This document shows positions 1 through 62,590 of a stretch of 64,000 nt of DNA, piece after piece. Source of the stretch: Macrostomum lignano (Eukaryota). Position 1 is the stretch's first letter. Each line of letters opens with the position of its first letter. Both the position numbers and the translations under genes were made by a program. The notes under the pieces are model-generated. The model made no database searches. It had not been told where the DNA came from and saw only the letters and a list, made by a program, of their open reading frames with translations. Where the stretch lies: contig NIVC01001225.1 in assembly GCA_002269645.1 (NCBI GenBank), forward strand, positions 1-64,000, read 5' to 3'.

Positions 1-2171
1 GCCTGTCTGCCAGCTGTCCGTTCAGTCCGGGGTTCAACCAGAAGTTCGGGCAGACGGCTAGGTGGGTTGCAGTGCGAGTGCAAGTGTAGCCAATTCATCG
101 TAATTGTTGCTTTGCGCTGATCATTTTGAAACTTCGGATTCAAACACCCCACCTCCCTGACTGATTCTCCATTTAAACACCCACCTCCCTGACTGATTCT
201 CCATTTAAACAGTCCCACCTCACTGACTGATTCTCCATTTAAACAGTCCCACCTCACTGACTGATTCTCCATTTAAACAGTCCCACCTCACTGACTGATT
301 CTCCATTTAAACAGTCCACCTCACTGACTGATTCTCCATTTAACAGTCCCACCTCACTGACTGATTCTCCATTTAAACAGTCCCACCTCACTGACTGATT
401 CTCCATTTAAACAGTCCCACCTCACTGACTGATTCTCCATTTAAACATCCACCTCACTGACTGATTCTCCATTTAAACACCACCACCTCTGACTGATTCT
501 CCATTTAAAACACCACCACCTCACTGACTGATTCTCCATTTAAACACCCCCACCTCACTGAATGATTCTCTCATTTAAACACCTGCTACCGGCTCAAACA
601 GTCGTCACAATCGGCCCGTATTCCGTGACTCACAGGTGTAGGAGCTGTTGCAACCAGCGACCAGCATATCCGCATAAGCTTTGGCAATGCTGAACAGCGC
701 ATTGGTGGTTGTCATCATGAACAATCCCGGATAGAACTGCGGCGAGGCAGCCATTGGCCAGCTGTTGTTGCAGCGGGAGCTGTAAGCCAAACTGCCCGTG
801 GTGCTGCAGTTGAACAGAGCCTCGTAGTAGGGCACCAGCCACGGGTTGTCGATGCTGCTGTCAGCCGACAGGCCGCTCAGGTGGGCCGTCACTCCGGCAA
901 CGTCGGGCGAGTTCACCTGCATCACCCAGCTGTTGTTGGCGCCCGGCCCAGGCCGCTCAGGGCGCTGTCGCGCGTCATTTCGCCCCAGTAGTTGCTGGCG
1001 ATGAACACGAGGCCGTTGTTGTCGGCGGTCAGCTGGACGAGGTCGGCCGATTTGTCCGACAGCACCACCACTACTCGGGTCTTGGAGATGTCGACTGTGA
1101 AATGAAGCCGGTTGAAATTGAGATTTGAAGTATCGAAATACTAAGAAAAATGTCTGTGTACTGGGGCGCTGCTATTGTAACATGCAACTCGCTGACAACT
1201 CTCACTCTGTCTTCCAACTGCAGCTCAGGGCTGCTGCCAACTAACCGCGACCGACTCTGCTTAACTCTGCTTCACTCACTCGGCTGGGTACCCTTTTGAA
1301 ACCATTACTATGCTCGTTAATCGGCGCACTTTAATGCACTTTATTCACATTAACGTGATTCACAAGTCTTAAATAGAAAATTGATTTTGAGCCAAAAGCT
1401 GAGATTTTCACCAACTTGCTTCTCACGCATCAGTCAGTTTATACAAAATTTGAAATTAAATCCTCTGCAGTATAACTCACGGATAATGTTCGACAGGATG
1501 GAGGCCACCGAACCGTCTGTGCCGACCTCAAGGCAGCGTGGCACGCAGATTCCCTCCCGCAGAGCCTGCACTCGGAACTCAGTAGCCAGCCGGTTTCCAT
1601 AATCATTGTTAGAGTACACCAGCTGGACGCACTTCCAGTTGAACTTGTTGATGACGGCGATGATGGCAGACACCTGCGACAGGCTGGCTGGTACGGTGCG
1701 GAAGACGCCCAGGGCCGTCAGGCCGTCGGAGCTGGCCGACGGGCTGACCAGCGGAACGCCGCCGAGGTCACGCAGCACCGGAGCCAGCGCTGTCGTCACG
1801 GCGTCGCCGTAGCTGACCCAGCTCCGGATCTTTGACGCGTCGATGTTGGCACCAGTCGACCTGTCGGGTAGCAGCAGGGTGCCCTGAGAGATGGACGTCA
1901 CCAGGCTGATGGCCACTGATGAGGAGCCGCAGACATCCAAGATGAGGGCGCCCAGCTTCACGGAGCCGCCGAAGCGCACGTCTGACTTGTTCCCGCCGTT
2001 AATGTAGTCCAGCGTCCACCTAACGGCCTCGGTGTAGCCGAAGCCTTCACCAGTTTTGACCGGGCCGCAGGCACCGCCGGAGCTGCCAGGAGAACGAACG
2101 TTGACCAGAACACCGACAAGGATGTCGCCCGGTAGGTACAGGTAGTTTGGCGTGCCAGTGAAGTACGGCGC
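1..2171 (-). CDS. VFT module 3 (end of exon 6, exon 7, start of exon 8), runs off the window
   Basis: YLPGDILVGVLV...CG, VKLGALILDVC, VPLVSPSASS, FRTVP, FNWKCVQLVYSNNDYG, NPWLVPYYEALFNC, C...SVCPNFW. Confidence 0.8.
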
Positions 2172-5100
2172 GCACTCGCTGCACCGGGAAGTGTCGCCGC
2201 ACGAAGAGGAAAGCGTGGCGACGCCGTGAGCGAGCTGCAGCAGGCCGGTGTCGAGGCTGAAGGCGGGCACCGTGGCTCCCACGGCCTCGTAGGCGGCGCT
2301 GCCGTTTTTCACGTTGTACACAGCCAAGCCGAAGGTCGGCACGGAGCGATCAGCAAAGGTAAAAGTCGAACCAGTCGATGGGTCGGTGAACCTGCCGTCC
2401 CCAAGCTGAGCAATCAGGTCGGCCTGCAGCCCAGTTCCGGTGCCGTTTCCGGCCGGGGAGGCGAACCAGAACGCGGTGCAGACGCCGCCGCTGCCGCCTG
2501 TGCAGACGCGGCTCAGGCGGGTTGAAGCGGCCAGCGCGTAGCTGGCCGACGCTCGCAGCACAGAGGAGGTGTAGGCGGACTCAGTGTACCTGGCCGAGGC
2601 TGTCAGGCTGTGCGAGGCGGCGCCAGAGCACAGAGTTGTGTAGCCGCGCATGCTGGCAGCGGACAGCGAGCAGCTGTTCAGGGACTCGTACCACTCCGAG
2701 TACCAGGGGTTCGCGGCTGTCTCGTTTGCCAGCTCGCGAGTCCGACCAGCCCAGGTCTGGTAAGGCGTAGCGGAGGCCGGGCGCGGCTCACCGACTGTGA
2801 TGACGCCCTGCGATTGGCTGACGCTGGTGGCAGTCAGCGCCGATTGGCTGGAGCCCCAGGCGACACCGCCGACCAGCTGGACTGGCGCCGTCACCTGCGG
2901 CAGCAGTTGGGCCGCGTCGCTAGCCGTCACCAAGGCGACAACTACGGCTGCCGAGGTGCGCGTTTTCACCTGGGCCATCACCTGGGCGTGGGTGCCGTTG
3001 ACGCCGATCACGTAGGTGGCCGAGACGCAGATGCGCCGGGAGCGCGCACCGGCAATGAAGAGGCGCGCAATCTCCTGGTTGGCGGCGTCCGGTGAGCAGA
3101 CCAGCTGGACGTAGTTGACGGACAGAGACGCCAGGGTGGACAGCAGAGCCTCGGCTTCGGCGGACGCGGAGGCCACAGTCTGGTAGAGATAGGGACTGGA
3201 GGTCAGAGCGGCTGGCCTGAAGGAGATCAGCGATCGCCGCTGGGCCGCCAGCAGCTGGGCGATGCCGTCGGTGCTGCTGGCGCTGCCGGAGCCGACCACG
3301 CCGATGATGCGGCTGGGATCGAGGCCGGCGATTCTCCGGGCGCCGCTCAGCAGGGAGTCGACGAGGTCCTGGCCCAGCACGGAGCTGCCGCAGTCGTCGA
3401 TTGCCACGGCGCCAATGAGGTCGGTGGCGTTCACCAGGGAGTTGGCCTGGCTCACGGAGTACAGAAAGGCGTCCAGCTCGCTGCTGCCATCGAGGCTGAC
3501 GGCGCCGCAGCTGCGCGGACTGGAGCCGGGCGAGTGCACGGAGAACACGCCCAGCAGGTAGAGCTGGCCGGGCACGTGGGCGAATTTGAAATCCGGCGCG
3601 GCGGCCAGGCAGCCGGAGCAGGGCGCCGCAGGGCAGGCAAACTGGGGCAGCGGGATCACGGCGTCCCTGCGCGATGGTGAGTCGATAATTCTTAGTGTTA
3701 CTAATAGTAGTGGTGACTTTTCGATTAGCTAGCTGCATTAAAACCTTTGCATCGTTTACGGAGCAGTTGAATAGACAGGTACAAGTAGACAGGTGGGTAT
3801 AGAGGTAGACGACGGGAGGCATGTAGGTAGACACAGTAGATATATTGGTCGACAGGTAGGTAAACTGGTAGACAGGTAGGTATATTGGTAGGCATGTAAG
3901 TATTACAGGTAGACAGGTAGGTATACTGGTAGACAGGTAGGTACACTGGTAGACAGGTAGGTATATTGGTAGGCATGTAAGTATTACAGGTAGACAGGTA
4001 GGTATACTGGTAGACAGGTAGGTACACTGGTAGACAGGTAGGTATACTGGTAGACAGGTAGGTATACTGGTAGACGGTAGGTAACTGGTAGACAGGTAGG
4101 TATACTGAGACAGGTAGGTATACTGTAGACAGGTAGGTAATATTGATAGACAAAGTAAGCATAAGGGTAGTCAGACAGGTATAGACAATTAGACAGTCCA
4201 TATTCAATCTAAGTAATAAAATATAGCTGCCAGTGCCTGCAACGAATCGCTATGAGCCTCACCTGGCCGAGTTGTACACATTCACGCTGCCGGACCGCCA
4301 TTCAGAGAAGGTACCAGCCAGACGAACCCCCACACGGACGTAGGCAAAGGCTGTGCCGTTCTGCCGCAGGTTGTGCACAAAGTAGTTGGTCTCGTAGGGT
4401 TCGCCGGTGTCCGTGAGCCGCAGCTGCTTCACCCGCCGGTCTGGCTCGCTGCTCGCCGTCGAATATCTGCCGGGGGAATTCGATTTTCGTAAGACTGGAC
4501 CGTTTGAGCATCTCAGTGTGAGACTAGACCATTTGAGAATCTCAGTGTGGGACTAGACCATTTGAGAATCTCACCGTGAGACTAGAATATTTGAGCATAT
4601 CCCCATTGAGACTAGACCATTTGAGAATCTCACCGTGAGACTAGACCATTTGAGAATCTCATTGTGAGACTAGACCCTTTGAGCATCTCTCCATTGAGAC
4701 TAGACCATTTGAGAATCTCATTGTGAGACTAGACCATTTGAGAATCTCATTGTGAGACTTGACCGTTTGAGCATCTCACTATGAGACTAAACCATTTGAG
4801 CATCTCACCGTGAGACTAGACTAGACCATTTTAGGCATCTCAGTGTGAGACTACATGTAGACCATTTGAGAATCTCCCCATTGAGATTAGACCATTTGCG
4901 AATCTCACTGTGAGACTAGAATATTTGAGCATCTCATCGTGAGACTTACAGTAGACCATTTCAGCATCTAACAATGAGACTAGACCACTTGAGCATCTCA
5001 ATGTGAGACTAGACCGTTTGAGCCTCTCAATGTGAGACGAGACCATTAAAGCTACCTCAGAGAGCCATAGAGCCTCTCACCTGGCAATCCGCTCAGCGGC

Positions 5101-7833
5101 CGTATAGCTAAAATCGGTCGCAGCCACCGCCGCGCTCAGCTCAGCATAGGTGGCGCCGCGCAGAGCCGCGCAGACCCCGCGAGCCCCGGCGCATTTTGTC
5201 TGCCAGAGTGAGCGCAGCGCCCTGGCGTAGGCGAAAGCGGCATCGATGGCCGGCTCGACCAAGCGGTTCTGTTGGTACTGGGCGGTGGCGGTGGCCATGT
5301 TGAAGGCCGGACAGGGGGAGCTCCGGGATTGGCCAGGTTGGTGCCGCCGGACAGGGTGCAGTTGCGGTCTGCATGAACCACTGCTGGAAGGCGGCGTTGC
5401 CACTACTGGCCACGTTGGACAGCTCGTTCAGGTAAAACGTCTCAAAAGCGTCGTTCGTTCGGTAGCCGAGACTCACGGAGGTCAGGCCGCGGGCGTTCCT
5501 GACGCTGAGCAGGGCGGCCGGATTGCCGAACGAGTCGGACATGATCCACTGGAAGGCGCTGGACGCCAGGTCGTTGAACAGTGGCGCGAAGTCGGCCAAT
5601 GAAACGACGGCCACCACGGCTCGAACGCCGGAGTCGCGCAGGCGGCCCAGAGCGGACGAGATTTCCGCTGCGCTTGGCGCAACGCTGATGGCTGACGCCT
5701 GGGCTACGCAGATGCCCAGGGAGGCGCTGAGGCTGACCAGGGCAGACTGACCGGCGGTGCCGTACGCGTCCGTGGTGTACAGGATGCCGATGTGAGTCCA
5801 GTTGTACTGCTTGAGCACAGCCCCGATTGCCTGCAAAAGTGTTGGCAGTGGTCTTCGCATGGCAGTAATAGTTGTGACAAAGGGGGTTGTAGCCTAGTAA
5901 GGGGGTTGTGGCCTAGTTAGGGGGTCGTAGCCTAGTGGTTAGAGCGTCAGACTCACGACTTGAAGGTCGTGGGTTCGATTCCCGATCCAACTGGAACAAT
6001 TTGTGTCCTTGAGAAAGACAACTAACTCTGCATTGCTTCAGTCCACCCAGCTGTAAAATGGGTGCCAGCATTAGCTGGGGTAATTGAGGGTGTGTGTGGC
6101 GACCCCCCAGTCCTTGGACTGAACAGCCGTACGCAGCCTTCAGATGCGCCGCGCAATAGCTGTGGCTGAGCTGTCGGTTGCACATGTGCCCAATAGGGCA
6201 GGTGTAATCAATTACGCTCGTATTATTATTACAACAATAATTCCAGCCTATAAACTACTGGCACCCGATGCATCCTGTTGAATTTTAGAATATTGATGAA
6301 GTTCAAGCATCGCACCGTGAACTCACATCAAACTGGGCGGTGTCGCTCGGGATGGTTCGGAAGAAGTTCGGATAGGCCGAGCGGTCGCTCAGGCCGGGCC
6401 CGCTGGCCGAGTAGGAGACCAACGGGATGCCGAAGTCGTTGAGCAGCGGCGCGAGCGACACGGCCGAGTCGGTGGTAGCTGGGCCGATGACGCCGGGCAC
6501 CAGGGTCTGGTTGGCTGAGCAGGAGGCTGCGGTGGACACCAGCTCGGGAAGATGGAGTCCAGCAGTGAGTCCGTCACCTGGCGCCTGCCGCAGGTGTCGT
6601 GAACGCTCAGCACTGCGGATGCAGGTGTTCATTTGAGAAATTATTCTCAAAAGCCCATTTTTAATGTTTCTCAATCCGCTGACTCAACCTTGCTACTCAA
6701 AGCTCATGCACTTTTACAGACCACTGACTCAACCCTGCTACTCAAAGCTCATGCACTTTGAGACGCCGTGAAGCCACAATTACTCACCGAACTTCACTCC
6801 GGGAATGTAGCTGTCATTTATTGCCAAGCCGGCTTCCGTTCCAGAATCCTTATTTAACAGATCGAACGCCCATTCCAACGCTTTGATGCTTGGCCAGGCG
6901 TCTGTGGAAAGAAATTGCATTTCATTTTAGCTCGTACTTTACATTACATTACATTACATTACATTTTTCCAGTGGAAAGTCGAATCAAGTAATTAATTTC
7001 TTACAGTTTACAGTTCTTACAGAAAGTAAATCTTTATTGGAATAACCAAGCTATTGAACCCATGCTTTTCATTGTCTATGGTCCAAAGGAGATCTAGGGA
7101 GCAAAAAATTCGAAAATTTTAGCGCGCGGTTTCATCAGTTGTGCAACAACTACTTTGGCGCTGGCGCCAATCCGGTGCTGGCGCCGTATTGGTGCTAGCG
7201 CCGCTTTAGTGTTAGCGCCATATTCGTGCTGGCGCCGCTTTAGTGTTAGCGCCGTATTCGTGCTGGCGCCGCTTTGGTGCTGGCGCCGCTTTGGTGCTGG
7301 CGCCGTATTGGTGCTGGCGCTGCTTTAGTGTTAGCGCCGTATTCGTGCTGGCGCCGCTTTGGTGCTGGCGCCGCTTTGGTGCTGACGCCGTATTGGTGCT
7401 GGCGCTGCTTTAGTGTTAGCGCCGTATTCGTGCTTCCGCCGCTTTAGTGTTAGCGCCGTATTCGTGCTGCCGCCGCTTTAGTGTTAGCGCCGTATTGGTT
7501 CTGGCGCCGCTTTGGTGCTGGCGCCGCTTGTGTGCTGGCGCCCCCACGATGGTGTACATGAAAGACGCCGTACCCTAATAAAAATCCTGACTAAAGCCCT
7601 GACTCACCTTCAACCAGATGCGAGCAGCCGAAACCGTCGGTGCCGGGCCGACGCAGCGCCGCCAGCACGGGCACCCGAACCGAGGCCGCGCTGCCGCCGC
7701 TGCCTAGCGAGAAAGGCGAATAGGCGGCCGATGCGGCGCAGGCCTCAGCCTCCAGAGACGATGCTGCCGATGCCGGCCGAAAGACAGCAAGCAAGACTAA
7801 GGACAGAGACACAGACAGCCAACTGACGGCCAT
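1..7833 (-). CDS. Multi-Venus-flytrap class C GPCR-like (mGluR/CaSR-type ectodomain) protein, 3'-partial; coding exons 7608-7833, 6788-6901, 6327-6612, 5081-5830, 4263-4466, 1481-3666, 634-1094, <1-57
   Basis: ATG at 7833 is followed by a hydrophobic signal peptide (MAVSWLSVSLSLVLLAVFRPASA). All junctions are GT-AG with matching phases (1,1,0,2,2,1,1). mGluR-like motifs include ALEWAFDLLNKD..IPGVKF, VHDTC, VIGP, IPLVSYSAS..LSDRSAYPNFFRTIPSD, YNWTHIGILY..DAYG and NPW..C, and they recur in three modules. The model needs four +1 corrections in homopolymers (942-944, 5314-5318, 5366-5367, 6546-6548). No 7TM domain lies in the window, so the GPCR assignment rests on the ectodomain only. Confidence 0.85.
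148..580. repeat. ~36-37-bp minisatellite (CCCACCTCACTGACTGATTCTCCATTTAAACAGT-like), ~12 copies, intronic
   Basis: Direct tandem copies are visible with small indels. Confidence 0.95.
2202..3608 (-). CDS. VFT module 2 (within exon 6), degenerate
   Basis: HVPGQLYLLGVFSVH...CG, IGAVAIDDCG, IIGVVG, NPWYSEWYESLNSC, C..G..GVC..FW. Confidence 0.8.
3770..4140. repeat. ~20-bp minisatellite (GTAGACAGGTAGGTATACTG) with higher-order variants
   Basis: Tandem copies are visible; explains spurious ORF 3725-4207. Confidence 0.9.
4263..7833 (-). CDS. VFT module 1 (exons 1-5) of the multi-VFT receptor
   Basis: Best-conserved mGluR-like module: GPATTDSAV, SYSASG, PSD, DAYG, GNAAFQQWF...NC, LVEPAIDAAFAYARAL. 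Confidence 0.85.
4490..5045. repeat. ~29-bp minisatellite (GAGAATCTCANTGTGAGACTAGACCATTT) filling most of intron 4
   Basis: About 18 tandem copies; each contains an imperfect TCTCA-nnn-TGAGA palindrome. Confidence 0.9.
5920..6240 (+). mobile_element. tRNA-derived SINE family 1 (tRNA-Met-like head, CORE-like central block, 3' stem-loop, (ATT)n tail), full length
   Basis: A-box TAGCCTAGTGG and B-box GGTTCGATTCC. The central TGTGTCCTTGAG(A/C)AAGACA..TAAC....CTGTAAAATGGG resembles the MIR/AFC CORE block. The 3' end has a GCCC-AATA-GGGC hairpin and an ATT tail. A near-identical copy lies at 19120-19432. Confidence 0.85.
7150..7540. repeat. GC-rich minisatellite of ~17-bp alternating subunits (TGCTGGCGCCGCTTT(A/G)G / TGTTAGCGCCGTATTCG)
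   Basis: Tandem copies are visible in intron 1 of the VFT gene. Confidence 0.9.
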
Positions 7834-8509
7834 TTCTCTGCTATACTCAGAGTTAAACTCGAATCGATGAGTTGAGTCACAGCAACTGTTGCGATCAGAT
7901 GATATTTAAGAACAGCAATCGCGAGAACAGAAGACACACAGACACAGGCGGTTCAACTGCAGCGGCAATATTAACAAAAAGTTGGGTGGGTACGGGCGCG
8001 CCCATTGCGAGGTTGGGGGGGGGGGGGGCCGGGGTGCAGGCCAGTTTAGCCATTCATTCATTCATGCTTGAGCCTCTGGCGCAGAGATGCTTTGCTGGCA
8101 TTGAATCTTGCCAGATAGACTTGGAAACAAATCTCTCTTTCATTTCAGAGAGGACTCGCTCTAGAGAGGCGCAGGAATCTCATTCGCAAGAATAGTGGGG
8201 GCGGACAGTTCAGTTGTGTCAGGGTGCGGTGTGCTGTAATTCTATCGCAGAGTAGCTATTATGGTATGCTGGCGATTTCGAACCTTTTGTTGCTTCATGC
8301 TCTACTCATACCGTAGGTGAAGATCTAGTAGTGATAAATTGGCAGCGTTTGTTCGATTTTTTTATTAGTTACGAACTTACCAACTGAATAACTAATAAAC
8401 TACATTACTAACTAACTGACTAACAAATTTACTAACTAACTGATAAACTAACTAACTTATTAACTAGCTGTACATCGTGTGTCAGCGTATGCGCTAACTA
8501 ACTGACTGG

Positions 8510-11972
<3,463 letters not shown>

Positions 11973-12184: not shown

Positions 12185-15100
12185 TTATTTGGAAGGGTTT
12201 AGCGAAACTTGCTTGTGTGGCTGATGTGTCTGCTGCTGTTGCTGCTGCTGTTGCTGCTGCTGTTGCACAGTTGAAGCCAACGGCAAAGCCCGAAGATTTG
12301 ACGCGGTCAATCCCTGACGCCTCTCCACGACCCTGGCAGTGCCGAAGCCCGCGTATTCAACATTGGCGTCCGCTTGCGCCTCATTTGCCGCATTGACCGC
12401 CTTGGCAGCTGCTGCCTTCTTGTCAGCCTGGAGGTTGCTCCGGTTAATTATGTTGTTGCGCGACTTCGGCATCACTGAAATGCCGCCCGGGTAGGTAGAC
12501 AGATTAGAAGGCAATTGGTAGGCAGAAAGGTAGGTACGTAGATAGGTAGGTAGAGAGATAGACAGATTGATAGGTAGGTGGGTAGGTAGGTAGGTAGGTA
12601 GGTAGGTAGGTAGGTAGGTAGGTAGGTAGGTAGGTAGGTAGGTAGGTAGGTATGTAGGTAGGTAGGTAGGTAGGTAGGTAGGTATGTAGGTAGGTAGGTA
12701 GGTAGGTAGGTAGGTAGGTAGGTAGGTAGGTAGGTAGGTAGGTAGGAACGTAAGTAAATTGGTAGGTAGGTAGGTAGGAAGTTTTCTAGATATGTAGGTC
12801 AGTAGGTAGGTAGAGAGATTGATAGGTAGTGCGTAGGCAGGTACGTTAGCAGAAGTACTCTATAATAAAGGGTCGAAAAAACAGAAACAAACCCCTGGAT
12901 GGGGGCAGCACATTCCGGCCAAACTGTCCGCTGTAGTTGCCGGGTGGGCGGTACCGGCCAACAACATAGACCCGGCCGGATTTGGACACCGCCCGGCCGA
13001 AACCGACCTCGGTTGAAGATCGCCAGACCAGCTGGGTAAAATGGCCTGCGATGCGGGATCACATCGAGTCAGCGTTGTGCTAGATGGTCCAGCAGTTGGT
13101 GTTCACATCTCTAAACTGTCACATCCTCAAACTGTCACATCCTCAAACTGTCACATCCTCAAACTGTCACATCCTCAAACTGTCACATCCTCAAACTGTC
13201 ACATCCTCAAACTGTCACATCCTCAAACTGTCACATCCTCAAACTGTCACATCCTCAAACTGTCACATCCTCAAACTGTCACATCCTCAAACTGTCACAT
13301 CCTCAAACTGTCACATCCTCAAACTGTCACATCCTCAAACTGTCACATCCTCAAACTGTCACATCCCCAAACTGTCACATCCTCAAACATTTTCATTCCT
13401 AAACTCTTCGGCCATTTGCTCACCGCAGGCCAGCTGATCCTCGCCTGTCCACTTGTACTGATCAATTTCGTGGTACCACAACTCGGAAAACAGATCGCCT
13501 TTAAAGAGAATTGCCGAGCAAGAAGAAGAAGATTAGCATTGCAGGATCCAAGGTGCAAAAATGATATTTTCAAAACGGGAGCATTACCTGGAAAATTAGT
13601 GAATCCTTTTCTAAACTTCATAGCCACATTCTCGCCCAGTCCGAGCGAGCTGCATTTGGGATCGTGCGCCATCTTGTCCTTGCCGGCCAGGACCTCCGCC
13701 CAGGCCTGGGCCAGCCTGGACAGCTCAGGGTTCAGGCGCAGCGGCGGCGACCGGTGCAACGCTCGGAACTCGTTGTGCGACACCAACAGCTGGTTCTCGA
13801 ATTTCTTCTGGCTGAAGATCTGAGGGTCGGATGAATTTAGATAGCAAATTTCTGCTTTGGTGTCTATAAAAATCAGTCTACACATATGTTGAGATTATGT
13901 GGCAGAGCAGCGCGGTGGCAACCGCGTCTGACTCTCTCGCTACGAACCCGTGGTTCGATTCCGCGCAACCACATTCATTTGGGGCTTGTGTGTGCACGAA
14001 AATTGGCCCAGGGGGTTTGTCATGTCATTCAAAACCATGAGGGCCAACACCCCAAGGCACAGAGACTGTATATGCCTGACGATTAGAAAGTCAGTGCCGC
14101 TGTACACCCTGTGTGAGCTGTGTGTGTGAGAGCATGTCTGCCCTCAGGAGTACAGCGGAACGGGCAGAATTGCCTTACCCGGGTTTCACGTAACAGCAAC
14201 AACAGCGTTACGGGATGTGCCTTGGGGCCTGGTAGTTACAAGTAAATGTGTACTTTTGAAGGGAGTGGGAATGCAGGTGCAAATTCAGGTGACCCGCAGA
14301 GTCAGCCCGCCATAGGAGGCAATAAGGCCTGTCTGATTTCGTTGACACCTGAGCATGCATACGGATAAGTACGGAGGCACACTCTCGCACAGGATGTAAG
14401 AGCTGCCCTGACTCTTTCATCGTTATTTTAGGCACTAGTTCTGTGTCAGTCTGCTGTTCACATGAATCCGGTGTTCTAAAACTGTATTAAAGCAAAACAA
14501 CTGAGCTGAGCTGCTCACTTTCTCATCGGATTTTGTCTCCTCCTTTTTCTCCGGCGCTCGCACGTGGCTCTGCTGCAGTGTCTGGCGAAGCAGCAGCGCC
14601 GCCACCGGACTCGAGGCCGCTTTGCCGCCGCCACCATCGGCGCTGCGCTGCGGCACAAAGTCGGTCAGGTTGCGCATTGCGGCGCTCCCTCCGCCCCCTC
14701 CGGCGCCGGTGCTGAACGTCACCGAGCGACGTTTCGCGGCGCCAAAGTCGCGCATCGCGAACGAAATCGGCGACGGCATCATCATTGGCTCCTTGACGAT
14801 CTCTTCGCCGGCTGCTTTCACCACTGGAGAGAGATATTGGGCAGCAGTGACAGGTGCTTTATTCTGTTTAGTTGAACACAAATCTGTTAGCTACTAATTA
14901 GTAGTCTATATTGGACACGAACAGACATGTAAAAGTACATTTATTTATAGAAAAGTTTACAATCGATAATGATACTGGTGCTTGAATCTGTGCAATGGTA
15001 GACATGTGCATTGCATATAGTATATGCAGCACAGATGTCATTACTCCATGCTACTTTTTTTACGCTAATGCAAAGATAAGGAGGCCGGCTGGATAGATAA

Positions 15101-16362: not shown

Positions 16363-19300
16363 GTGGGAGAGGGAGAGGGAGAGAGAGAGGGAGATGGAGA
16401 GGGAGAGGGAGAGGGAGAGGGAGAGGGAGAGGGAGAGGGAGAGGGAGAGGGAGAGGGAGAGGGAGAGGGAGAGGAAGAGGGAGAGGGAGAGGGAGAAGGG
16501 AGAGGGAGAGGGAGAGGTATACTCAGCAACATTGAAAAGTCGCCACTCTATGCGCCAGTGAGCAATTTCTCTTGGACTATTCTGAAATAAAAGATACGAG
16601 AAAACTGATCGGGGTAGCTTTAATCCGTCCAACCCTCGCACACCGCTCGCCCACCACTTCATTCCTCAACTCAAGTCTGCCGCGGCTTAGCTGAGTTGCG
16701 TCACTCGCAAAGATTGAGAGACTTTACCCGCACTCGCAAAAGTGGCGACCACAGACAGAATCTTCTGTGATGGCGACTCTTCGATGTTGCTGAGTATATA
16801 AAGAGATATAGAGATAGAGTAGAGAAAAAGAGAGAGATAGAGCAAAGAGCTTACCTGGGAAGTTAGTCTCTCCAATGCGGAACTTCATAGCGATATTCTC
16901 TCCGGTGTTATTACTTGAGCAGTTGGGATCGTGCGCCATCTTGTCCCGCATCGCTAACACGTCTGCCCAGTCCTGGGCCAGCCTGTTCAGCTGGGGATTA
17001 AGCCGTAGCGGGCCGGCCTTGTGCTGGGCCCGGTACTCGTTGTGCGAGACCAGCATTTGGGTGACGAATTTGCGCATATTGAAAGCCTGTTTGTTGATTT
17101 GTATAATGTTTGCTTTTTCGCATTTTTAGCTATTAGACTAGAAATCTTTGAGGTGCCGCAGGTCGTACGAGTATGAAAACATATTTGTAAAAAACTATAA
17201 TTGCGCCGGATTATGCGGCAGGGCATAAAGGCGGAAATCTTCCATCCCCCATGGGAGGGACCGAGTGCTAGTCCACCCATAGTAAATCTTCAATCTTCTA
17301 TTATAAATTAAAAACCAATATGGCAAAGCATACCGGAACTGCCTCCTCCTCTAGATCTTCAGCTGAGGGTCTTTTCTGCCGAGTGTGCGAGCCGCCCAGC
17401 GTCTGGTGCAGGATGTTGGCGGTCAGGGGCCCCTTGGCGCCGCCTCCGTCAGATTTTCCCGACAGAGCGCCAAACAGCGACTTCGACGAGGCAGGCTCTG
17501 AATTGGCCGGGCCCTGAGCTTTTGACTTCAAGGAGCCAAACAAAGACATCGCCGATACAGCCGCCGGGGCAGTAGGGCCAGCCGAAGACTTGGCACCAAG
17601 AGCGCCGAACAAAGACTTAGTAGACGGGGCGGGCTCCTCATTAGTCGCTGTTGATAGCGGGGCTTCTGGTGCGGAGCTCGGAGATGACTTGACGGCAGGA
17701 GGTGTCGGCACTCGTTTGGCGGGCTCTCGGTCTGACGACGGCTCTCGCTCCGCCTTCGGCGACCGAGGCGCAAATGGAGCAGCAGCTTCTCCTTTCCTGT
17801 TGTCAGCTGCTATGCCGGACACCCGCGATGCTCGATAGTCTGTTTGTAACAGAGGGATGAGCAAGCCAGTAAAATGCAAGATTTGCACGCCGCTACCACT
17901 TGCTAGGGGTGAGAATTTTCTTAGTGCTAGCAGAGATGTCTTATGAGCGGCAACAAAGTCGTCTTTAGCAAGCAAACTCACTCCCAGAGGCCCGAGCTCT
18001 GGACACGCGCGGCAAAACGTTTCTAGGAAATTCTCCGGCATTATTTCCCATCGGGCGGTAGCGGCCAACAATGTAGACGCAGCCGGACATGGAGATGGCT
18101 CTGCCGAAGCCGGCCTCGCGACTGGCGCGCCAGACAACTTGGGCAAAATGACCTGCGGTTTTCGGAATCGATCGGTGAGCGCCATTCAATGTAGCGAGTC
18201 TTTTTTTCGCTGTGCCGCGACTGTCAGCAAGTTTTTGCTCTTAGGTTTTTCGAATATTTAACTTACTGCATTCGAACTGATCTTCTAAGCTTCGCCAATC
18301 GAAATTGTGCACTTCAGCGTACCAGGTGTCCACGAACTCTTGAGCTGATTATGTACCGGATGAGCACATTGAAAAGTTATCAATTGACACTTGCCATAGA
18401 AATAATTTGAAAAATGTTTTGCAATACATTATGTATTGTAGGATACTCTGACAATGGGTATGAGTATCTCAGTCAGTAACTAACGCAGTAGAAGGCTTAA
18501 GAGGGTTGTAGCCTAGCAGGGGGGTTGTAGCCTAGCAGGGAGGTTGTAGCCTAGCAGGGGGTTGTAGCCTAGCAGGGGGGTTGTAGCCTAGCAGGGGGGT
18601 TGTAGCCTAGCAGGGGGGTTGTAGCCTAGCAGAGGGGTTGTAGCCTAGCAGGGGGGTTGTAGCCTAGCAGGGGGGTTGTAGCCTAGCAGGGGGGTTGTAG
18701 CCTAGCAGGGGGTTGTAGCCTAGCAGGGGGGTTGTAGCCTAGCAGGGGGGGGGGTTGTAGCCTAGCAGGGGGGTTGTAGCCTAGCAGGGGGGTTGTAGCC
18801 TAGCAGGGGGGTTGTAGCCTAGCAGGGAGGTTGTAGCCTAGCAAGGAGGTTGTAGCCTAGCAGGGGGTTGCAGCCTAGCAGGGGGGGGGGGGGGTTGTAG
18901 CCTAGCAGGGGGGTTGTAGCCTAGCAGGGAGGTTGTAGCCTAGCAGGGAGGTTGTAGCCTAGCAGGGGGGTTGTAGCCTAGCAGGGGGGGGGGTTGTAGC
19001 CTAGTAAGGGGTTGTAGCCTAGTAAGGGGGTTGTAGCCTAGCGGTGGGGTTGTAGCCTAGTAAGGGGGTTGTAGCCTAGCAGGGGGGTTGTAGCCTAGTA
19101 AGGGGTTGTAGCCTAGTAAGGGGGTTGTAACCTAGTGGTTAGAGCGTCAGACTCACGACTTGAAGGTCGGGGGTTCGATTCCCGATCCCACTGGAACAAT
19201 TTGTGTCCTTGAGCAAGACACTTAACTCTGCATTGCTCCAGTTCACCCAGCTGTAAAATGGGTGCCAGCATTAGCTGGGGTAATTGAGGGTGTGTGTGGC

Positions 19301-22300
19301 GACCCCCCAGTCCTTGGACTGAACAGCCGTACGCAGCCTTCAGATGCGCCGCGCAATAGCTGTGGCTGAGCTGTCGGTTGCACATCTGCCCAATAGGGCA
19401 GGTGTAATCAATTATTATTATTATTAATATTATTAACTCAGTAGCAATCCCTCTCGCGTTGACAATAATTTGGGACTGATAATCAAATTTGGCCTGGTCG
19501 CGTGTCGTGCGACTTCCAACCATGAAGGCCTATTCCCAAGAGTGCGCGCCTGTCTGACGATGGGACACTGTAGACCAGGGGCCCTCGGGTCCTTTGAAAC
19601 TTCACAATAGCAGTCCGGCCCGCCTAAGGTTTGTGCCTCTTCTCAGCGCTCTCAGCCTTCTCTCCTCAGCCTTCTCTTATCTCTCTCTCTTATTCAATAT
19701 CTCCCTTCTTTCATCTCTCTTCCCCTCTCTCCCTTCTCTCCTCTACTTTCTCTCCTTTACCTTCTCTCCTCTCCCTTCTTTCCTCTACCTTGTCTCATCT
19801 CCCTTCTCTCATCTCCCCTCTCTCATCTCCTTTCTCTCATCTCCCTTCTCTCCTCTACCTTCTCTCTTCTCCCTTATCTTATCTCGGGGCCTTCTCTCAT
19901 CTCCCTTCTCTTCTCTACCTTCTCTCCTCTCCCTTATCTCATCTCCCTTCTATCATCTCTGCGCTCTTCTCTTCTCCTCTATTCTCTCTTTTCTTTCCCT
20001 TCCTCTGGTCCGCAGTCATGCGCTGGCCATCTAACCATTTAGGTAAGAAATCAAGCCAAACCCTGCTGTAAACGCTGTGCTTGCTCAAAGGTCAGCTGGT
20101 TACCGCCTCAGCTTGTTGTTGAGTTGTCGCCAAAAGCCTTCTTACCTGTCACTTCCCCATGGCCAATGTCGCACTTTCTGGCCACGTTCTCGCCAATGCC
20201 AGCCGCGTCGCATTTCAAATCGTAGGCCAGCGAGTCTCGCTTTGCTAGCAGCTCCGCCCAGGCCTGCGCTTGCCGGGTCAGCTCCTCGCTGAACCGCAGC
20301 GGCGGCGACTGGTGCAGCGATCGGTACTCGTTGTGCGCAGCCAGCATCTGGGCAGCGAACTTGCGCGTGGTTGCATTCTGCAGGAGGGAGCAGCAGGGCA
20401 AACTACTCTGACATTCAACTTATTTTTTGTTGGAGACAGGGGCTCTGCGCATCCTGGTGCACTTCAAGCGACATTGTCACAGCCGGCGAGAGGCATTACT
20501 GCCCATTCCGCCGACTCCCAGGCACTCAAGCGCGCGGATACGTACGCAGTCATACGCACAGGCACACACTCACACAGGAGTGTACAGCGGCCCTAACTCT
20601 ATTTATCGTTAGGCATGTACACTTCACTGTGCCTTGAAGGTTGGCCCTCAAGGGCGTTGACTGCACGAGCAGAGCCAAGCCGAGATTCCAATTTAGCCTC
20701 AAACTTATATAACTGCACTTGGAATCGAGCCTGGGCCGCTGGCATATCAGAGCTCCTCTAGGCTACGGCCCTCCCTGATAAGCAGCTTCTGGTACTCATT
20801 TCATAGCGTAAATAGAAACTAAAAAAATGCAACCAATGAAATCAAAAAGGCCCTCACACTGTTCAGAGTGTTTGCTGAATCCAGATTAACAAATCTAGCC
20901 GTTGCCTCTTGCTGGCAAATGCCTTTAAAATGATCTGAAAAGAATAAAAATGTCAAACAGAACAGTGTAGCCAATTTGAAGTTTTAATTAAACAGAATCA
21001 AGCTGTCACGAGCCACTTAAAAAATCATTATTATTCCTCGACCTCAAGGCAGTTCAGATTGATGCACGTGACAACAGCAAGGGCGACTGTAGTAGAAGAA
21101 CGGCTATCTTGGTTTGTTTTAGAGAAACTATTAAAATATTGGTCATTGGTCAAAGCAGATCTAATTATTGTACTTTTAATTCACCTTGCCTGTTTTATTG
21201 CTTAGCTCATTTATTGCAAAGTTTTATTTCATTTTACGTAAATGCGCCAAGCCAAAACTCATAAGCTGGCCCAGTACGACTTTATATCTTAGTTTCCTGG
21301 CTCTTATTGTTATTTATTATAGTAAATCATAACAGTTTTGAAAGCAATTTCCTAGTTTACAATGCATACACATAAACCTCCAACAGGTCTTCATGCTTCT
21401 AGCAAAGATTTGCTATATAAACTCCTCCTCTCTGACTCGTGGTTGTTCTGGCGCAAAACAGAAACCTGGTGAACTCTGGCGCAAAACAGAAACCTGGTGA
21501 ACTCTGGCGCAAAACAGAACCCTGGGGAACTCTGGCGCAAAACAGAACCCTGGGGAACTCTGGCGCAAAACAGAACCCTGGGGAACTCTGGCGCAAAACA
21601 GAACCCTGGGGAACTCTGGCGCAAAACAGAACCCTGGGGAACTCTGGCGCAAAACAGAACCCTGGGGAACTCTGGCGCAAAACAGAACCCTGGGGAACTC
21701 TGGCGCAACGCCTTCGGCGAAATGGTTCCGCAACCAGAGCTGAGGCAATTCTGGCCATTCCGCTGACTCCTGAGCACATGCAAGCCCTCCAATACTGTAC
21801 TCAAGTACGCACACACACACAAGCTCACACGGGTGTACAGCGGCCCTGACTGTCTAATCGTCAGGCATGTACACTCTGTGTGCCTTGGATGTTGGCCTTC
21901 ATGGTTGCGAATGGCACGGCAGCCCCGTGGGCCAAGTTTTGTGCACACAGAAGCCCCAAATGAATGTGCATGGTGGCGCACCGAATCGAACCAGCTGGGT
22001 CGTGACGCGGAGTCGGACACGTTTACCGCTGAACTTCTCTGCCCCATTATCCACGATTAAGTGTAAATGCCACTTTAAACACCGTATTGGAGATGAAGTT
22101 ATGATCCCCTGAAAACTGCAACTACCGTATTGCATGCACCTGAAAGCCGTGGAAACTCCGGGATCGGCTTACCGGGATCGGCCAGCGGCCGAACAATCAG
22201 CGCCGAATCGAGCGGTGAATCGGCGGCAGCTTCTATTGAGAACCGGAGCGGCAGAAGCCGTACGCACCTGCTTGCAGCTTTTGAATTGCTAAACTCCAGG

Positions 22301-38500: not shown

Positions 38501-41500
38501 TCTCTGTCCCATCTGCTTCTACTCGCCCTCTCTCCTAGAAGCAGTAGCTCTCTTTCTCTCTCGCTCTCTGTTCCTCTGTCTATCCAGAGGGAGAAGCGGG
38601 CAAAAAGCGCACAGGCTCAGCGCGCGTAGTGTGTGTAGCTAGTCGCTATACTCCAGCCTCCGATCTCGCAGGCAGCCAGCTAGTCTGAATTAGTTAGTTC
38701 CAGATCTTCTACTAAGGCTCTTCTACTTTAGCTTTTTAGATCTGGGTCTGGGAAGAATTGAAGCCGCATTGATTGGTTAGCTATATGAGAAAATGATATT
38801 GTAATAATATGGGATAAGAATCCAGACGGGACAAATGTGTTTTATCTTAGGAAAATGCGTTATTAAAGATTACTGATGCATCATACAGGCTCTATGAGCC
38901 GATGTAGGAATCTTGGAACTCCCGTAATAGTTTTTTCTTCATTCTTGGCATCCTGGACCAACCTGAAAATTCGGGATAATAAGAGGGCAGAGAAGCTCAG
39001 TGGTGAACGCGTCTGGCTCTCGCGCCGCGACCCCTGGTTCGATTTCGTGCGCAGTCACATTCCTTTTTGGGCCTCGTGCGCACTAAAATTGGCGCCGTGG
39101 GGGGGGAGTTCATAGAGCTTCTCTCCTCTCTCTTCTCTTTTCTTTCATCTACTCTCTCCTCTCATCTCATCTCAAATTTCTTCTTTCTTTCCCCCATTCC
39201 ATCTTTTTTCCACTCTCATCTGGCCTGCAGCAATGATCAAGATTCCCTATCTGGCCCTTAAAGTAAAAAGTTTACCAACCCGTGATTCATAAAGTGTCTG
39301 TAGTTAGTCGCTATTTATAGGAGAATAGTGAGAATCTGGCAGCGATTAAGATTGAACTGTTTAATAATAATACTAATAAAAGAGACACAAATGGAAACAG
39401 CAAGACAACAATAAGGCAGACAGGTAAATCAGACAGGAGCTGGTTTGCTGTTTTGACTGATCTGCGTTCTGCACTGTCTGTAAGCTCTATAGCTGTAGGT
39501 AAACTGTGAGATTGATCTCTGAGGCACTTGAGAAGTCTGAAGATTGTTATTATTTATCTACTTTGTTTATACGACATTTAATAATTATGGTTATATTTAG
39601 TCTATTAGCTGCATAGCAAGACTTATTTCTACGAGCGTAGTAGTAGGTAAAATTTTTAGTAGCTAAAACTTCAACTAGAATGCATTCAATATCTGGTGGC
39701 TTCGGTTACAGCAGTTGACTGACTGGTTCAAATGAACTTAACTGGTTTGATGTATACAAAGAATATGTTGATTTTCTCTAAGTGTTATTTTTCAGCTCCT
39801 GTGTCGGCTTCTCTGTGTGCTTTTCTCTATACACAAACATACAGTATGTATAAACATATTGTGCTATCCTATTTCTGCCGTTCCCACAGTCTCCATTATT
39901 TGTCACTTTTTGCCAGTTCTGGTTGACTTTGACTCTGCCTTATTGTAATAATAATCTTTCGTTACTTTCATATTATATATAATATCAAAAGAAACCATTG
40001 CCTGAGAATGAAAAAGAAACAGCGGACGATTGGGAAGTTAATTAAATCTAGCTATCTGTCTATCTATCTGTTTCTCTGTTGCTTCTGTGTGCCACTGTTT
40101 TAATGCAGAGGCCGCCTTCTGTCTCGCCCGGAATCTGCTTTCTTCTGGGATTGGAGAAAAAATTGCTTAGAACTGTCTTAATCCACTTTAGTTTTGTGTT
40201 TGTATGCATAGATATACTTTCCCATTTGGTCTTTCTGTTACTCCCTACTTTGGACTGTCCAGCTGTTCGCTACAGGGTTAATTATATTTATGATTCACTT
40301 TATGGTCACCTTCTGTCTGCGAGTGATTCTTCTGTGTCCGTTTTTCTTTGCATGTTCTTTTGTATGTGAGTATCGGTCTGTTTTTTGTCTGTTCTATTTG
40401 TGTCTTTCTGTTCTATCTGTGTCTGTTCTATTTGTGTCTTTCTGTTCTATCTGTGTCTGTTCTATTTGTGTCTTTCTGTTCTATCTGTGTCTGTTCTATC
40501 TGTGTCTGTTCTATCTGTGTCTGTTCTATTTGTGTCTTTCTGTTCTATCTGGGTGTCTGTCTGTTCTATCTGTGTCTGCTCTGTCTAGGTGTCTGTCTGT
40601 TCTATCTATGTGTCTGTCTGTTCTATCTGTGTCTGTCCTGTCTATGTGTCTGTCTGTTCTATCTGTGTCTGGTCTGTCTAGGTGTCTGTCTGTTCTATCT
40701 ATGTGTCTGTCTGTTCTATCTGTGTCTGTTCTGTCTATGTGTCTGTCTGTTCTATCTGTGTCTGTTCTGTCTATGTGTCTGTCTGTTCTATTTGTGTCTG
40801 TTCTGTCTAGGTGTCTGTCTGTTCTATCTGTGTCTGTTCTGTCTAGGTGTCTGTCTGTTCTATCTATGTGTCTGTCTGTTCTATCTGTGTCTGTTCTGTC
40901 TAGGTGTCTGTCTTTTCTATCTGTGTCTGTTCTGTCTAGGTGTCTGTCTGTTCTATCTATGTGTCTGTCTGTTCTATCTGTGTCTGTTCTGTCTATGTGT
41001 CTGTCTGTTCTATCTGTGTCTGTTCTGTCTAGGTGTCTGTCTTTTCTATCTGTGTCTGTTCTGTCTAGGTGTCTGTCTGTTCTATCTGTGTCTGTTCTGT
41101 CTATGTGTCTGTCTGTTCTATATGTGTCTGTTCTGTCTAGGTGTCTGTCTGTTCTATCTGTGTCTGTTCTGTCTAGGTGTCTGTCTGTTCTATCTGTGTC
41201 TGTTCTGTCTAGGTGTCTGTCTGTTCTATCTATGTGTCTGTCTGTTCTATCTGTGTCTGTTCTGTCTATGTGTCTGTCTGTTCTATCTGTGTCTGGTCTG
41301 TCTAGGTGTCTGTCTTTTCTATCTGTGTCTGTTCTGTCTAGGTGTCTGTCTGTTCTATCTGTGTCTGTTCTGTCTAGGTGTCTGTCTGTTCTATCTGTGT
41401 CTGTTCTGTCTAGGTGTCTGTCTGTTCTATCTATGTGTCTGTCTGTTCTATCTGTGTCTGTTCTGTCTATGTGTCTGTCTGTTCTATCTGTGTCTGTTCT

Positions 41501-53097: not shown

Positions 53098-54789
53098 GTG
53101 AGCGCTATAATTGTTTTACTGTTTACTGTATATAGTACATGCTTAAACCTACCTGTGTCTCTGTGTGTTGTCCGCATTATTTTGGCTCTCTCTCTATCAC
53201 TCTGTCTATCAGGTAAGTATATCCGCTCCGATGCTATGTAATAATAGTTTAGCTAAGCTTAGGCCACACAAGAGCTTAACATCACTGACAACAGCGACTC
53301 CTTGGACACTCTTACTTGGTAAACACTGCTCTGGCTGAACTATAAAAGCAGCAAGCAGCAGCCTTTTGAGTTGTCCGCTTTTGTGCAAATATCTGTGTAT
53401 ATGTATGTATGTATGGATGTATGTATGTATTGGTAAATATTGTATGCCTTGCTCTATATTCAAACTGCTAATCTGTGTGCGTGTGTGCGTTTGTTATTCA
53501 CCGGTGCGGGGCACTATTTGACCTGCGGCTTGGCTCTGACGTTGTGTGCAGTTTTTTTGCGTTTGTGTGTGTGTGCGCGTCCTAAAACCTATCAGCTAAT
53601 CTCTTCTCTGGCAATAGCTTAGTCTGTGTGCAATAGTAGCAGCTTATATAATATAGTTTATTAGTATTATCTCTGTATTTGCGTAGGCGGCTCGTCTGTT
53701 TCTTTACAATGATAAGCGCAATTTTTTACTCTATGTTGGTAGAATAGAAACCAACTTGACATTGATTGAAGAAACCCGTTGAAAATGTTACTTTGGCAAG
53801 AATCGCGAAAGAGTCTTTGCAAACAACTCATAAATTGACGCATGAATAGTATAGCATGAACTTTTTATTATTAATGCTTGTCATTACGTTTTGCATTTTA
53901 AAAGGAGATCTGTTTTAAACAAAAAAATCGCATGCGCTCTGGCTGCCAAACCCCTCAGTTCGAACGCTTAGCGCGGCATCTTCATATTTAGCATCGTTGC
54001 ATTAATATTTACAATACTAGCTAATTATTTTACTACTTTATCATCAAATTTTGTTTAATTTTCGCAGCGCCGTCGAGAAATGCAACGCCGAATTTTGGTA
54101 GGCCGTCCCCATCGATAATTTTGCTCTCTATTTATATTTTACTAGACACAAAAACCGAACCCACATCTTTGAAACACATCTCTGCCTGGTGCTGCTATGC
54201 TTTTCATTTTGAGCATTTCTTTGCGGTTGTTGTATCCACTCTCTGGTCTATCACTCTTTAGCCTGCATCTATTGTATTGAGCTTCTTCTGTCTCTTATTC
54301 ATTTTTACACCGGTTTCTCGAGAGCACTCACGTATGTGTTTATAAAGAATTGTGTTTAGCAGGTGTTGCTATGGAGCTCAACTACTGTCTGTCGGCATTT
54401 TTCTGTGATGTCGAAAACAACCCTATTGTAGAATTTCATTTTTTGTGGACAAGTTTTATTTTTTTATTTCATTTATTAGACTTTTTCTTCATTTTTTTAT
54501 AAGCATTAACAAAAATTGAATTTTATTACCCTTCAGCGAGCTCAATTCTTCAAAACCTGTTTAGACCTACCTTTGCCATTGATACGCTTGCCTTAGTTAA
54601 TGTTTAGCGAAATGGCTGCTGCATTTTGGTGAATTACTCTATGGTAGATTTTGCATTTTTACACCCACCCTTTTTGTCATGGTAATTTGCAATTTGATTG
54701 GAGCATTCCTGATCCCAACTCTGCCACTGGTGACGCAACACTTGCATATTATCGTAGCTTATACCCATTGGCCCAGCTCCTTCTGCCAT

Positions 54790-55335
<546 letters not shown>

Positions 55336-56269: not shown

Positions 56270-56520
56270 TTTCAATTTTATGGCGCCCTATTAGTTCTAT
56301 TGTGGCGCCTCTAATAGGTCTATTGTGGTGCCATTGTTAGGTCTATTGTGGCTCTCTTATTAGGTATATCGTGGTACCCTTAATATGTATTTTGTGGTGC
56401 CCTTATTAGGTCCATTGTGGTGCCATTATTAGGTCCATTGTGGTGCCCTTATTAGGTCCATTGTGGCGCCCTTATTAGGTCCATTGTGGCGCCCTTATTA
56501 GGTCTTATTTGGTTGCCCAA
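56270..56520. repeat. 23-bp minisatellite (CCTTATTAGGTCCATTGTGG(T/C)GC)
   Basis: Direct reading. Confidence 0.9.

Positions 56521-58202: not shown

Positions 58203-58560
<358 letters not shown>

Positions 58561-61075: not shown

Positions 61076-61076
<1 letters not shown>

Positions 61077-61135
<59 letters not shown>
61077..61135. repeat. (GT)n microsatellite
   Basis: Direct reading. Confidence 0.98.

Positions 61136-61136
<1 letters not shown>

Positions 61137-61717: not shown

Positions 61718-62590
<873 letters not shown>

Follow-up and report, generated by a model that had tools for sequence, protein, structure and literature searches.

This study concerns a 64,000-nucleotide stretch of the genome of the flatworm Macrostomum lignano (contig NIVC01001225.1, positions 1–64,000), hereafter called the window, and in particular a gene on its minus strand at bases 1–7833. 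We consider it very probable that these bases hold the 5′ portion of a gene encoding a class C receptor with several Venus-flytrap (VFT, or flytrap) modules in one chain, and that the gene continues beyond base 1 into module 4 and, by homology, into a module 5 and a seven-transmembrane (7TM) domain. Of this chain, the window covers the signal peptide and the first two modules in full and module 3 for the greater part; a module 5 and a seven-helix domain in the M. lignano gene are predicted from its homologues. When the three visible modules were scanned separately (amino acids 1–528, 529–1016, and 1017–1429), each alone passed the Pfam ANF_receptor cut-off of 25.4 bits, with 130.3, 55.7, and 71.3 bits (E = 1.2e-37, 5.6e-15, and 9.7e-20), and all three matches are far above chance. 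The preliminary description of this DNA had proposed three consecutive modules of the metabotropic glutamate receptor (mGluR) type with their landmarks, a claim that it tied to at least two full ANF_receptor hits. The claim survives with three independent hits, and the landmark structural cysteines are present in every module.

Gene model and single-base frameshifts

We rebuilt the gene model independently along the minus strand from 7833 to 1. The result was 8 exons, 7 introns, and four single-base insertions, which together give a stop-free frame of 1,429 amino acids; this agrees with the earlier estimate of one open reading frame (ORF) of about 1,430 amino acids after splicing and four +1 corrections. 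All seven introns have GTGAG at the 5′ end and AG at the 3′ end, and every junction is in phase. The exons are as follows.

Exon 1, 7608–7833, minus strand: ATG at 7833, signal-peptide-like start, and beginning of module 1; donor GAAG/GTGAGT; identical to the N-terminus of A0A1I8I1E6
Exon 2, 6788–6901, minus strand: part of module 1, containing ..DAWPSIKALEWAFDLLNKD..; acceptor CCACAG, donor GTGAGT
Exon 3, 6327–6612, minus strand: part of module 1 with the pocket motifs GVIGPATTDS and SYSASGP and the loop cysteine; one base absent after 6546 (C-run)
Exon 4, 5081–5830, minus strand: second lobe of module 1; bases absent after 5369 and 5314, both C-runs
Exon 5, 4263–4466, minus strand: end of module 1; in-phase splice to exon 6
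Exon 6, 1481–3666, minus strand: 728 uninterrupted codons with a cysteine linker, the whole of module 2 (2202–3665), a second cysteine linker, and the first half of module 3
Exon 7, 634–1094, minus strand: part of module 3; one base absent after 943 at a C/G run
Exon 8, 1–57, minus strand: part of module 3; leaves the window at base 1 and is continued in the database proteins P0001 and P0151

The N-terminus, MAVSWLSVSLSLVLLAVFRPASA followed by AS, resembles a signal peptide when judged by eye; a signal peptide had also been named in the preliminary description. Even without correction, the raw ORF of exon 3 gave a Pfam ANF_receptor match of 4.2e-14, and the ORF of exon 6 matched the same family in two stretches (5.8e-32). 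The junction between exons 5 and 6, ..VYNSA/R/DAVIPLPQFAC, agrees with the unbroken sequence of the orthologues. Furthermore, the GC content at third codon positions (GC3) of the model was 0.82, compared with 0.46 for the GC content of the introns, which supports the frame and argues for real coding sequence. Minisatellites fill most of four of the seven introns (148–581, 3785–4152, 4492–5047, and 7153–7542, with units of 34, 20, 29, and 17 bp, respectively).

A HMMER search with the exon 6 protein identified 799 relatives, and the top match was an M. lignano protein, P0001 (UniProt A0A1I8I1E6). A second M. lignano protein, P0151 (UniProt A0A1I8IKL0), belongs to the same cluster. The gene model is identical to both entries, and only short segments at or close to the four insertion sites differ among the three sequences. 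Both entries are partial, and both pass all four frameshift sites in the frame of our model. They have the same residues at three of these sites (..IFPELV.., ..FMQTRNC.., and ..GLGPGANN..); at the fourth, P0001 reads ..APPCPAF.. and P0151 is without the 12 residues after ..APP. Exon 8 reads ..VCPNFWLNPGLNGQLADR, and its frame, which had been described as still open at base 1, is prolonged by the database proteins: both extend past base 1 into a fourth ANF_receptor module detected by Pfam, and P0151 terminates in the cysteine linker that would stand before module 5. The earlier wording of “at least three” modules is therefore borne out: the database proteins of M. lignano extend to four modules and the linker before the next, and the orthologues described below have five.

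A word-index protein search missed P0001, although the exact query lies within this protein, and also missed the contig proteins P0002 and P0008, whose C-terminal sequences were rows of a query profile; the exhaustive HMMER search recovered P0001, P0002, and P0008. Similarly, a 741-amino-acid ORF used as a query in the word-index search gave no match despite the presence of an identical UniProt protein in the collection. Words rich in Ala, Ser, and Gly probably saturate the candidate list of this type of search.

The four insertions are needed after 6546, 5369, 5314, and 943. All of them shift the frame in one direction, and a C-run on the coding strand is present at all four sites. Because all four sites are C-runs, we read the frameshifts as assembly errors: their most likely cause is the loss of single bases from these runs in a long-read assembly, and not decay of the gene. 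Deep PacBio sequencing was the basis of two earlier assemblies of M. lignano, ML2 and Mlig_3_7, and this species has a neopolyploid genome (PMC10733133). Two other explanations of the frameshifts were rejected: programmed frameshifting, because the sites are simple C-runs that the database proteins pass without a break, and very short introns, because there is no GT..AG at these sites and the protein alignment is continuous.

The neopolyploid genome also raises the main alternative, that this copy is a pseudogene, i.e., a decaying near-identical duplicate, and that another copy yields the intact transcript behind the UniProt entries. The species has two to four near-identical paralogous copies (PMC10733133), and the two database proteins differ slightly from each other. 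Nevertheless, the corrected model contains no in-frame stop and no substitution damage, its GC3 remains high, and all its splice sites are intact. The four lesions are all one-base losses at C-runs in the same direction, which is the error pattern of long reads, and the same lesion occurs in the neighbouring large cadherin gene, where a one-base repair is also needed at ~27045 (..GAAACC^TAAGA..) to open the first large exon. We therefore consider a pseudogene unlikely, and assembly error remains the preferred reading.

Tandem flytrap modules and their orthologues

The three modules that lie in the window are listed below, together with the state of their amino-acid-binding signature.

Flytrap module 1, 4263–7764, spliced, amino acids 24–528, minus strand: ANF_receptor 130 bits; signature T, S, D, Y, D kept; loop cysteine
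Flytrap module 2, 2202–3665, amino acids 529–1016, minus strand: ANF_receptor 55.7 bits; fold and structural cysteines kept; signature residues all replaced
Flytrap module 3, 1–2201, spliced, amino acids 1017–1429 onward, minus strand: ANF_receptor 71.3 bits; signature partly kept; final ~50 residues beyond the window

The pairwise identity among the modules is 21–28%, which indicates that they are old duplicates. ANF_receptor and Peripla_BP_6 were the only Pfam families that the modules matched, and no bacterial solute-binding (type 2) family was among the matches. Modules 2 and 3 cannot be separate genes, because exon 6 encodes the former and the first half of the latter without interruption.

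Nine of the ten best HMMER matches to the exon 6 protein were colinear proteins of 2,189–2,872 amino acids. The query aligned to residues 519–1235 of P0002, and its alignments to eight further proteins lay at corresponding positions; the colinear matches cover modules 2 and 3, with E-values down to 6e-151. The colinear orthologues of Tubulanus, Babylonia, Argopecten, Sinanodonta, Physella, and Bulinus have 2,730–2,872 amino acids. The named relatives come from a nemertean (Tubulanus), molluscs (Babylonia, Physella, Bulinus, Argopecten, Sinanodonta, and Octopus), and a brachiopod (Lingula), and all are annotated as “uncharacterized” or “hypothetical” proteins. More distant relatives were found in Saccoglossus, Anneissia, Branchiostoma, Centruroides, Limulus, Procambarus, a mite, a tick, and Orthoptera. 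Accessions of orthologues include XP_074641006.1 (Tubulanus), XP_076434694.1 (Babylonia), XP_059178375.1 (Physella), XP_023931987.1 (Lingula), and XP_002735016.2 (Saccoglossus). Among the 36 match clusters with names looked up (30 proteins together with their cluster members) there were no vertebrate, fly, or nematode members, and no search was aimed at those groups.

A Pfam scan showed five ANF_receptor domains and one C-terminal 7tm_3 domain in all five spiralian proteins scanned (Tubulanus, Babylonia, P0002, Lingula, and Octopus). Four ANF_receptor domains and 7tm_3 were found in Saccoglossus (a hemichordate), Anneissia (a crinoid), and Centruroides (a scorpion), and three with 7tm_3 in Branchiostoma (amphioxus). 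Thus, 7tm_3 was present in every scanned multi-VFT relative other than the M. lignano fragments (9/9); the long relatives of Limulus, Procambarus, the mite, the tick, and Orthoptera were left out of the scan. The 7TM domain of the orthologues is closest to those of mGluR3 and mGluR2. The NCD3G domain, which the preliminary description had named as a landmark to be expected, was detected in none of 11 multi-VFT relatives, full-length or partial (E ≤ 0.01), and this expectation was not borne out. Instead, a conserved motif, C-x(2-6)-C-x2-C, stands ahead of every module and ahead of the 7TM domain; it is similar to the initial cysteines of the cysteine-rich domain in mGluRs.

We then constructed a neighbour-joining tree of 54 modules. 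Modules 1–5 formed position-specific clades that included flatworm (modules 1–4), nemertean, mollusc, and brachiopod sequences, and M. lignano modules 1–4 fell in clades 1–4. Colinear, position-specific orthology of modules joined by cysteine linkers is therefore present, and these clades indicate that the five-module chain is older than the split of these phyla. The M. lignano protein has the same linkers and the same loop-cysteine pattern as the orthologue group, but it is unusually GC-rich in its sequence and rich in Ala, Ser, and Gly, is only ~28% identical to the group, and shows in the window the first three of five expected modules. In addition, two public contigs of 9,030 nt (SRR25726911) and 10,192 nt (SRR32835171) each contain a whole receptor with five modules and 7TM as one uninterrupted ORF of 2,802 or 2,730 amino acids with short flanks. 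As the M. lignano copy is split by introns, we read these two intron-free contigs as transcripts.

These data also bear on the possibility that the modules are separate neighbouring single-flytrap genes, or that the multi-VFT proteins in databases are prediction fusions of tandem arrays. Fused-looking entries are known from Polypterus senegalus, in which “CASR protein, partial” entries (P0016, P0018, P0028, P0029, P0071, and P0077; 1,633–3,927 amino acids) showed three to eight flytrap matches in a local scan. In P0016, the only Polypterus entry inspected closely, most flytrap matches were to partial domains. Fusion of receptor genes that lie in tandem arrays probably accounts for these entries, and a multi-ANF entry is therefore not to be trusted in every case. 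In the M. lignano gene, modules 2 and 3 share an exon, with no stop, 7TM, or signal peptide between them; the in-phase canonical splice between modules 1 and 2 reproduces contiguous orthologue sequence; each orthologue has a single 7tm_3 at its extreme end; the whole ORF is found on two intron-free contigs; and the order of the modules is conserved across phyla. On these grounds we regard separate or fused genes as extremely unlikely, and a single multi-flytrap chain remains our reading.

The search with exon 6 also revealed a second uncharacterised architecture, in which a signal peptide is followed by two tandem ANF_receptor domains with the same cysteine linker and by one transmembrane (TM) helix; the rest of the chain is a long disordered tail, and 7tm_3 is absent. 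Examples are P0041, P0042, P0062, and P0047 (locus L003 on contig LFEI02000154.1, GCA_001039355.2). Two flytraps and no match to a custom 7TM profile were recorded in 46 of 208 proteins in a local domain scan, and some of these may be fragments.

Several points weigh against the reading of the M. lignano gene as a multi-flytrap G-protein-coupled receptor (GPCR). First, there is no 7TM domain within the window, both M. lignano database models end before module 5, and the GPCR end of the gene is predicted from homology alone. Word-index searches for the M. lignano 3′ end, with module 4 as the query, returned only fish mGluR8 proteins, which do carry the NCD3G domain (PF07562), and with an orthologue profile of module 5 and 7TM gave no match. 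Second, four frameshifts fall within 4.3 kb of coding sequence and could also mark this copy as a decaying duplicate in the neopolyploid genome. Third, the module tree carries no support values, the pocket and cysteine assignments given below rest on one MAFFT alignment, and the status of the two public contigs as transcripts is one that we infer from their absence of introns. Finally, the mode of action outlined in the next section is likewise one that we infer, and the junction between modules 2 and 3 was of low confidence in the structural model (residues ~451–510 of the model), so that a rigid relay between modules is without structural support.

With the C-terminus outside both the window and the database models, the M. 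lignano protein could be something other than a GPCR, namely a multi-flytrap binder that is secreted or crosses the membrane once, or a flytrap receptor with a kinase domain, like the Venus kinase receptors (VKRs). The two-flytrap proteins with a single TM helix, a disordered tail, and no 7tm_3 offer a precedent among related proteins, and truncated soluble mGluR-like binders and VKRs are reported from flatworms (PMC3206071, PMC2680970). Nevertheless, each of the four visible modules has its one-to-one orthologue among modules 1–4 of the proteins with five VFTs and 7TM, and the last part of P0151 is the linker ahead of module 5. Moreover, kinase, guanylate cyclase, and ion-channel domains were found in no close relative in the Pfam scan, and a receptor guanylate cyclase or an iGluR was rejected for the same reason. 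A protein that is not a GPCR is thus quite improbable, and a multi-flytrap receptor with a predicted 7TM domain is still preferred. The term “class C GPCR-like” in the preliminary description is supported by homology, as mGluR flytraps are the closest solved relatives of every module tested and the orthologues end in 7tm_3, but the 7TM domain itself lies outside the window.

Comparison with known systems and a possible mode of action

To our knowledge, a single flytrap is present in each chain of the class C receptors characterised so far. The preliminary description had said the same of these and other receptor families, which is valid for the characterised families but not for the public databases, which contain many uncharacterised multi-VFT proteins. 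A 2025 GPCR survey lists three architectures, ANF with NCD3G, ANF alone, and Cache with EGF (PMC12716839), and we found no multi-flytrap receptor in that survey or in the class C and GPCR-repertoire literature retrieved. In the searchable (non-subscription) literature, we found tandem flytraps described only in bacteria (BvgS/EvgS/CdgH). A class C design with tandem flytraps appears, from sequence comparison, to be conserved across many invertebrates, and we found no publication that describes it. The sequences of these proteins are already public, under no name.

The closest solved proteins by sequence are mGluR2, mGluR7, mGluR3, and mGluR8 for modules 2 and 3, and mGluR6 and mGluR8 for module 1. 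We modelled modules 2 and 3 with AlphaFold2 (AF2), using a 962-amino-acid stretch of P0001 that is identical to the gene model and an alignment of 70 sequences. The mean predicted local distance difference test score (pLDDT) was 84.8 and the predicted template-modelling score (pTM) was 0.67; both modules were modelled with confidence and the junction with low confidence. A run with an alignment of 3 sequences and a construct truncated in module 3 gave a pLDDT of 41. A Foldseek search of the PDB with the model of modules 2 and 3 retrieved the ligand-binding domains of mGluR5, mGluR3, mGluR1, mGluR7, and mGluR8, with a target TM-score of up to 0.84 and a query TM-score of ~0.40; as the latter is only ~0.40, each solved chain covers one module. 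No PDB chain spanning more than one module was present among the 50 best Foldseek matches shown.

Among known receptors, the mGluRs are the nearest in sequence and fold (closest to groups II and III, i.e., mGluR2/3 and mGluR6/8): they share ANF_receptor, PDB matches of 1e-20 to 1e-30, the fold, and the structural cysteines, module 1 keeps the Ser/Thr, Asp, Tyr, Asp signature of amino-acid binding, and the 7TM domain of the orthologues is nearest to that of mGluR3/2. The differences are three to five flytraps per chain instead of one, only a three-cysteine linker before each module and the 7TM domain with no NCD3G detected, and the loss of the glutamate-type pocket in several modules. The GABA-B receptors are class C receptors in which the flytrap also joins the 7TM domain without a cysteine-rich domain, and in which only some flytraps of the complex bind ligand, but they have one flytrap per chain and were absent from the sequence and fold matches listed. 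The bacterial sensor kinases BvgS and EvgS are alike in having tandem flytraps ahead of one transmembrane signalling unit, the BvgS homologues carry one to five periplasmic VFT domains, and integration of several chemical signals has been proposed for them (PMC4352136). Their flytraps are bacterial solute-binding-type domains that feed a histidine kinase, whereas the M. lignano gene is a spliced animal gene with ANF_receptor modules and, by homology, a 7TM GPCR, so that the likeness is an analogy only. The two-flytrap single-pass proteins, which are also uncharacterised, share the tandem ANF_receptor domains and the cysteine linker with the M. lignano protein, but differ in having two modules, one TM helix, a disordered tail, and no 7tm_3. 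Venus kinase receptors combine a flytrap, a single TM helix, and a tyrosine kinase domain, and no kinase was found in the close relatives of the M. lignano protein.

The pocket residues were compared with S165, T188, D208, Y236, and D318 of mGluR1, which we take to be the signature for binding of the alpha-amino-acid group. At these positions the alignment has T, S, D, Y, D in module 1; A, A, A, A, V in module 2; and D, S, S, Y, N in module 3, and across species the module 4 clade retains the signature best. All spiralian module 1 and module 5 sequences have a single cysteine in the loop that corresponds to the one bearing the inter-subunit disulfide of mGluRs, and no module 2, 3, or 4 sequence has it. 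In M. lignano, it is encoded at ~6500–6530 in module 1 (..STAASCSANQ..), and modules 2–4 are without it. One of the cysteines in the mGluR cysteine-rich domain that the linker motif resembles is bonded to the second lobe of the flytrap.

All class C mechanisms known to us assume one flytrap per subunit in a dimer, in which closure and re-orientation are followed by 7TM activation. A receptor with several flytraps may work in a related way. The receptor would be dimeric, with the membrane-proximal module 5 as the canonical class C transducer; closure of its flytrap would re-orient the two seven-helix domains and activate the G protein. The distal modules could be extra sensors of small molecules or spacers, and a movement of the second lobe in one module could reach the following module through the three-cysteine linkers. 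Modules 1 and 4 are putative sensors of the amino-acid type. Module 2, whose pocket is lost, is more likely to be a structural relay or a binder of something else. As the loop cysteine occurs only in modules 1 and 5, the dimer may be clamped at both ends through these cysteines.

These considerations raise the tentative possibility, which we hold to be doubtful, that the proteins represent an ancient and so far undescribed type of class C receptor in protostomes and deuterostomes, in which several chemically distinct flytraps of one chain are mechanically coupled through vestigial cysteine-rich linkers to one seven-helix domain. If so, one receptor would compute a combinatorial response (coincidence or ratio) to several small molecules, or ligands would be sensed tens of nanometres from the membrane; a multi-ligand sensor or a long-reach receptor had also been suggested in the preliminary description. 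The absence from vertebrates, flies, and nematodes, if it holds, would explain why the family has gone unnoticed. Three to five serial flytraps also raise the questions of how closure of a distal module reaches the membrane domain, whether the modules bind different ligands, and whether the cysteine-rich domain is dispensable. RNA interference (RNAi) and transgenesis are workable in M. lignano. With this tractable species and with members in molluscs, arthropods, echinoderms, and amphioxus, the function of the family is open to study in several systems. For genome annotation, the results imply that an “uncharacterized” ANF_receptor protein is not necessarily a fusion artefact, even when it is very long.

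Surroundings in the window

Upstream of the receptor gene, at ~660 bases from its start codon, lies a (CTAA)n microsatellite of 3.5 kb with ~870 copies (8494–11972), which is followed by a (GGTA)n array of ~74 copies (12517–12813). The two arrays explain the local GC content of 25–30% and the extreme skew. Partial domains of the CAP/cysteine-rich-secretory-protein family are encoded by two minus-strand ORFs at 13343–13885 and 16724–17077 (E = 4e-6 and 3e-8), which probably belong, as exons, to a single CAP-family gene or to two in tandem. The neighbouring cadherin gene mentioned above is a very large Fat-like gene with many exons on the plus strand (25731–53135; Pfam Cadherin and Cadherin_FAT4_N). 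This gene, the GT-AG introns, and the minisatellites that fill introns mark the window as animal DNA. ORFs of up to 850 amino acids at 40212–42764 and 54650–62460 were rejected as genes, as they are low-complexity tandem arrays (..LSVLSVSV.. and ..SIYLSIYL..).

A repeat of ~300 bp occurs in two copies, one in intron 3 of the receptor gene (5900–6260) and one at 19100–19530. The copies are near-identical over ~300 bases, and the mean column identity across the whole alignment is 88%. Their tRNA-like parts on the plus strand (5921–5990 and 19121–19190) scored just above the Rfam threshold, and ARAGORN called no tRNA in either copy. The repeat is probably a tRNA-derived short interspersed nuclear element (SINE).

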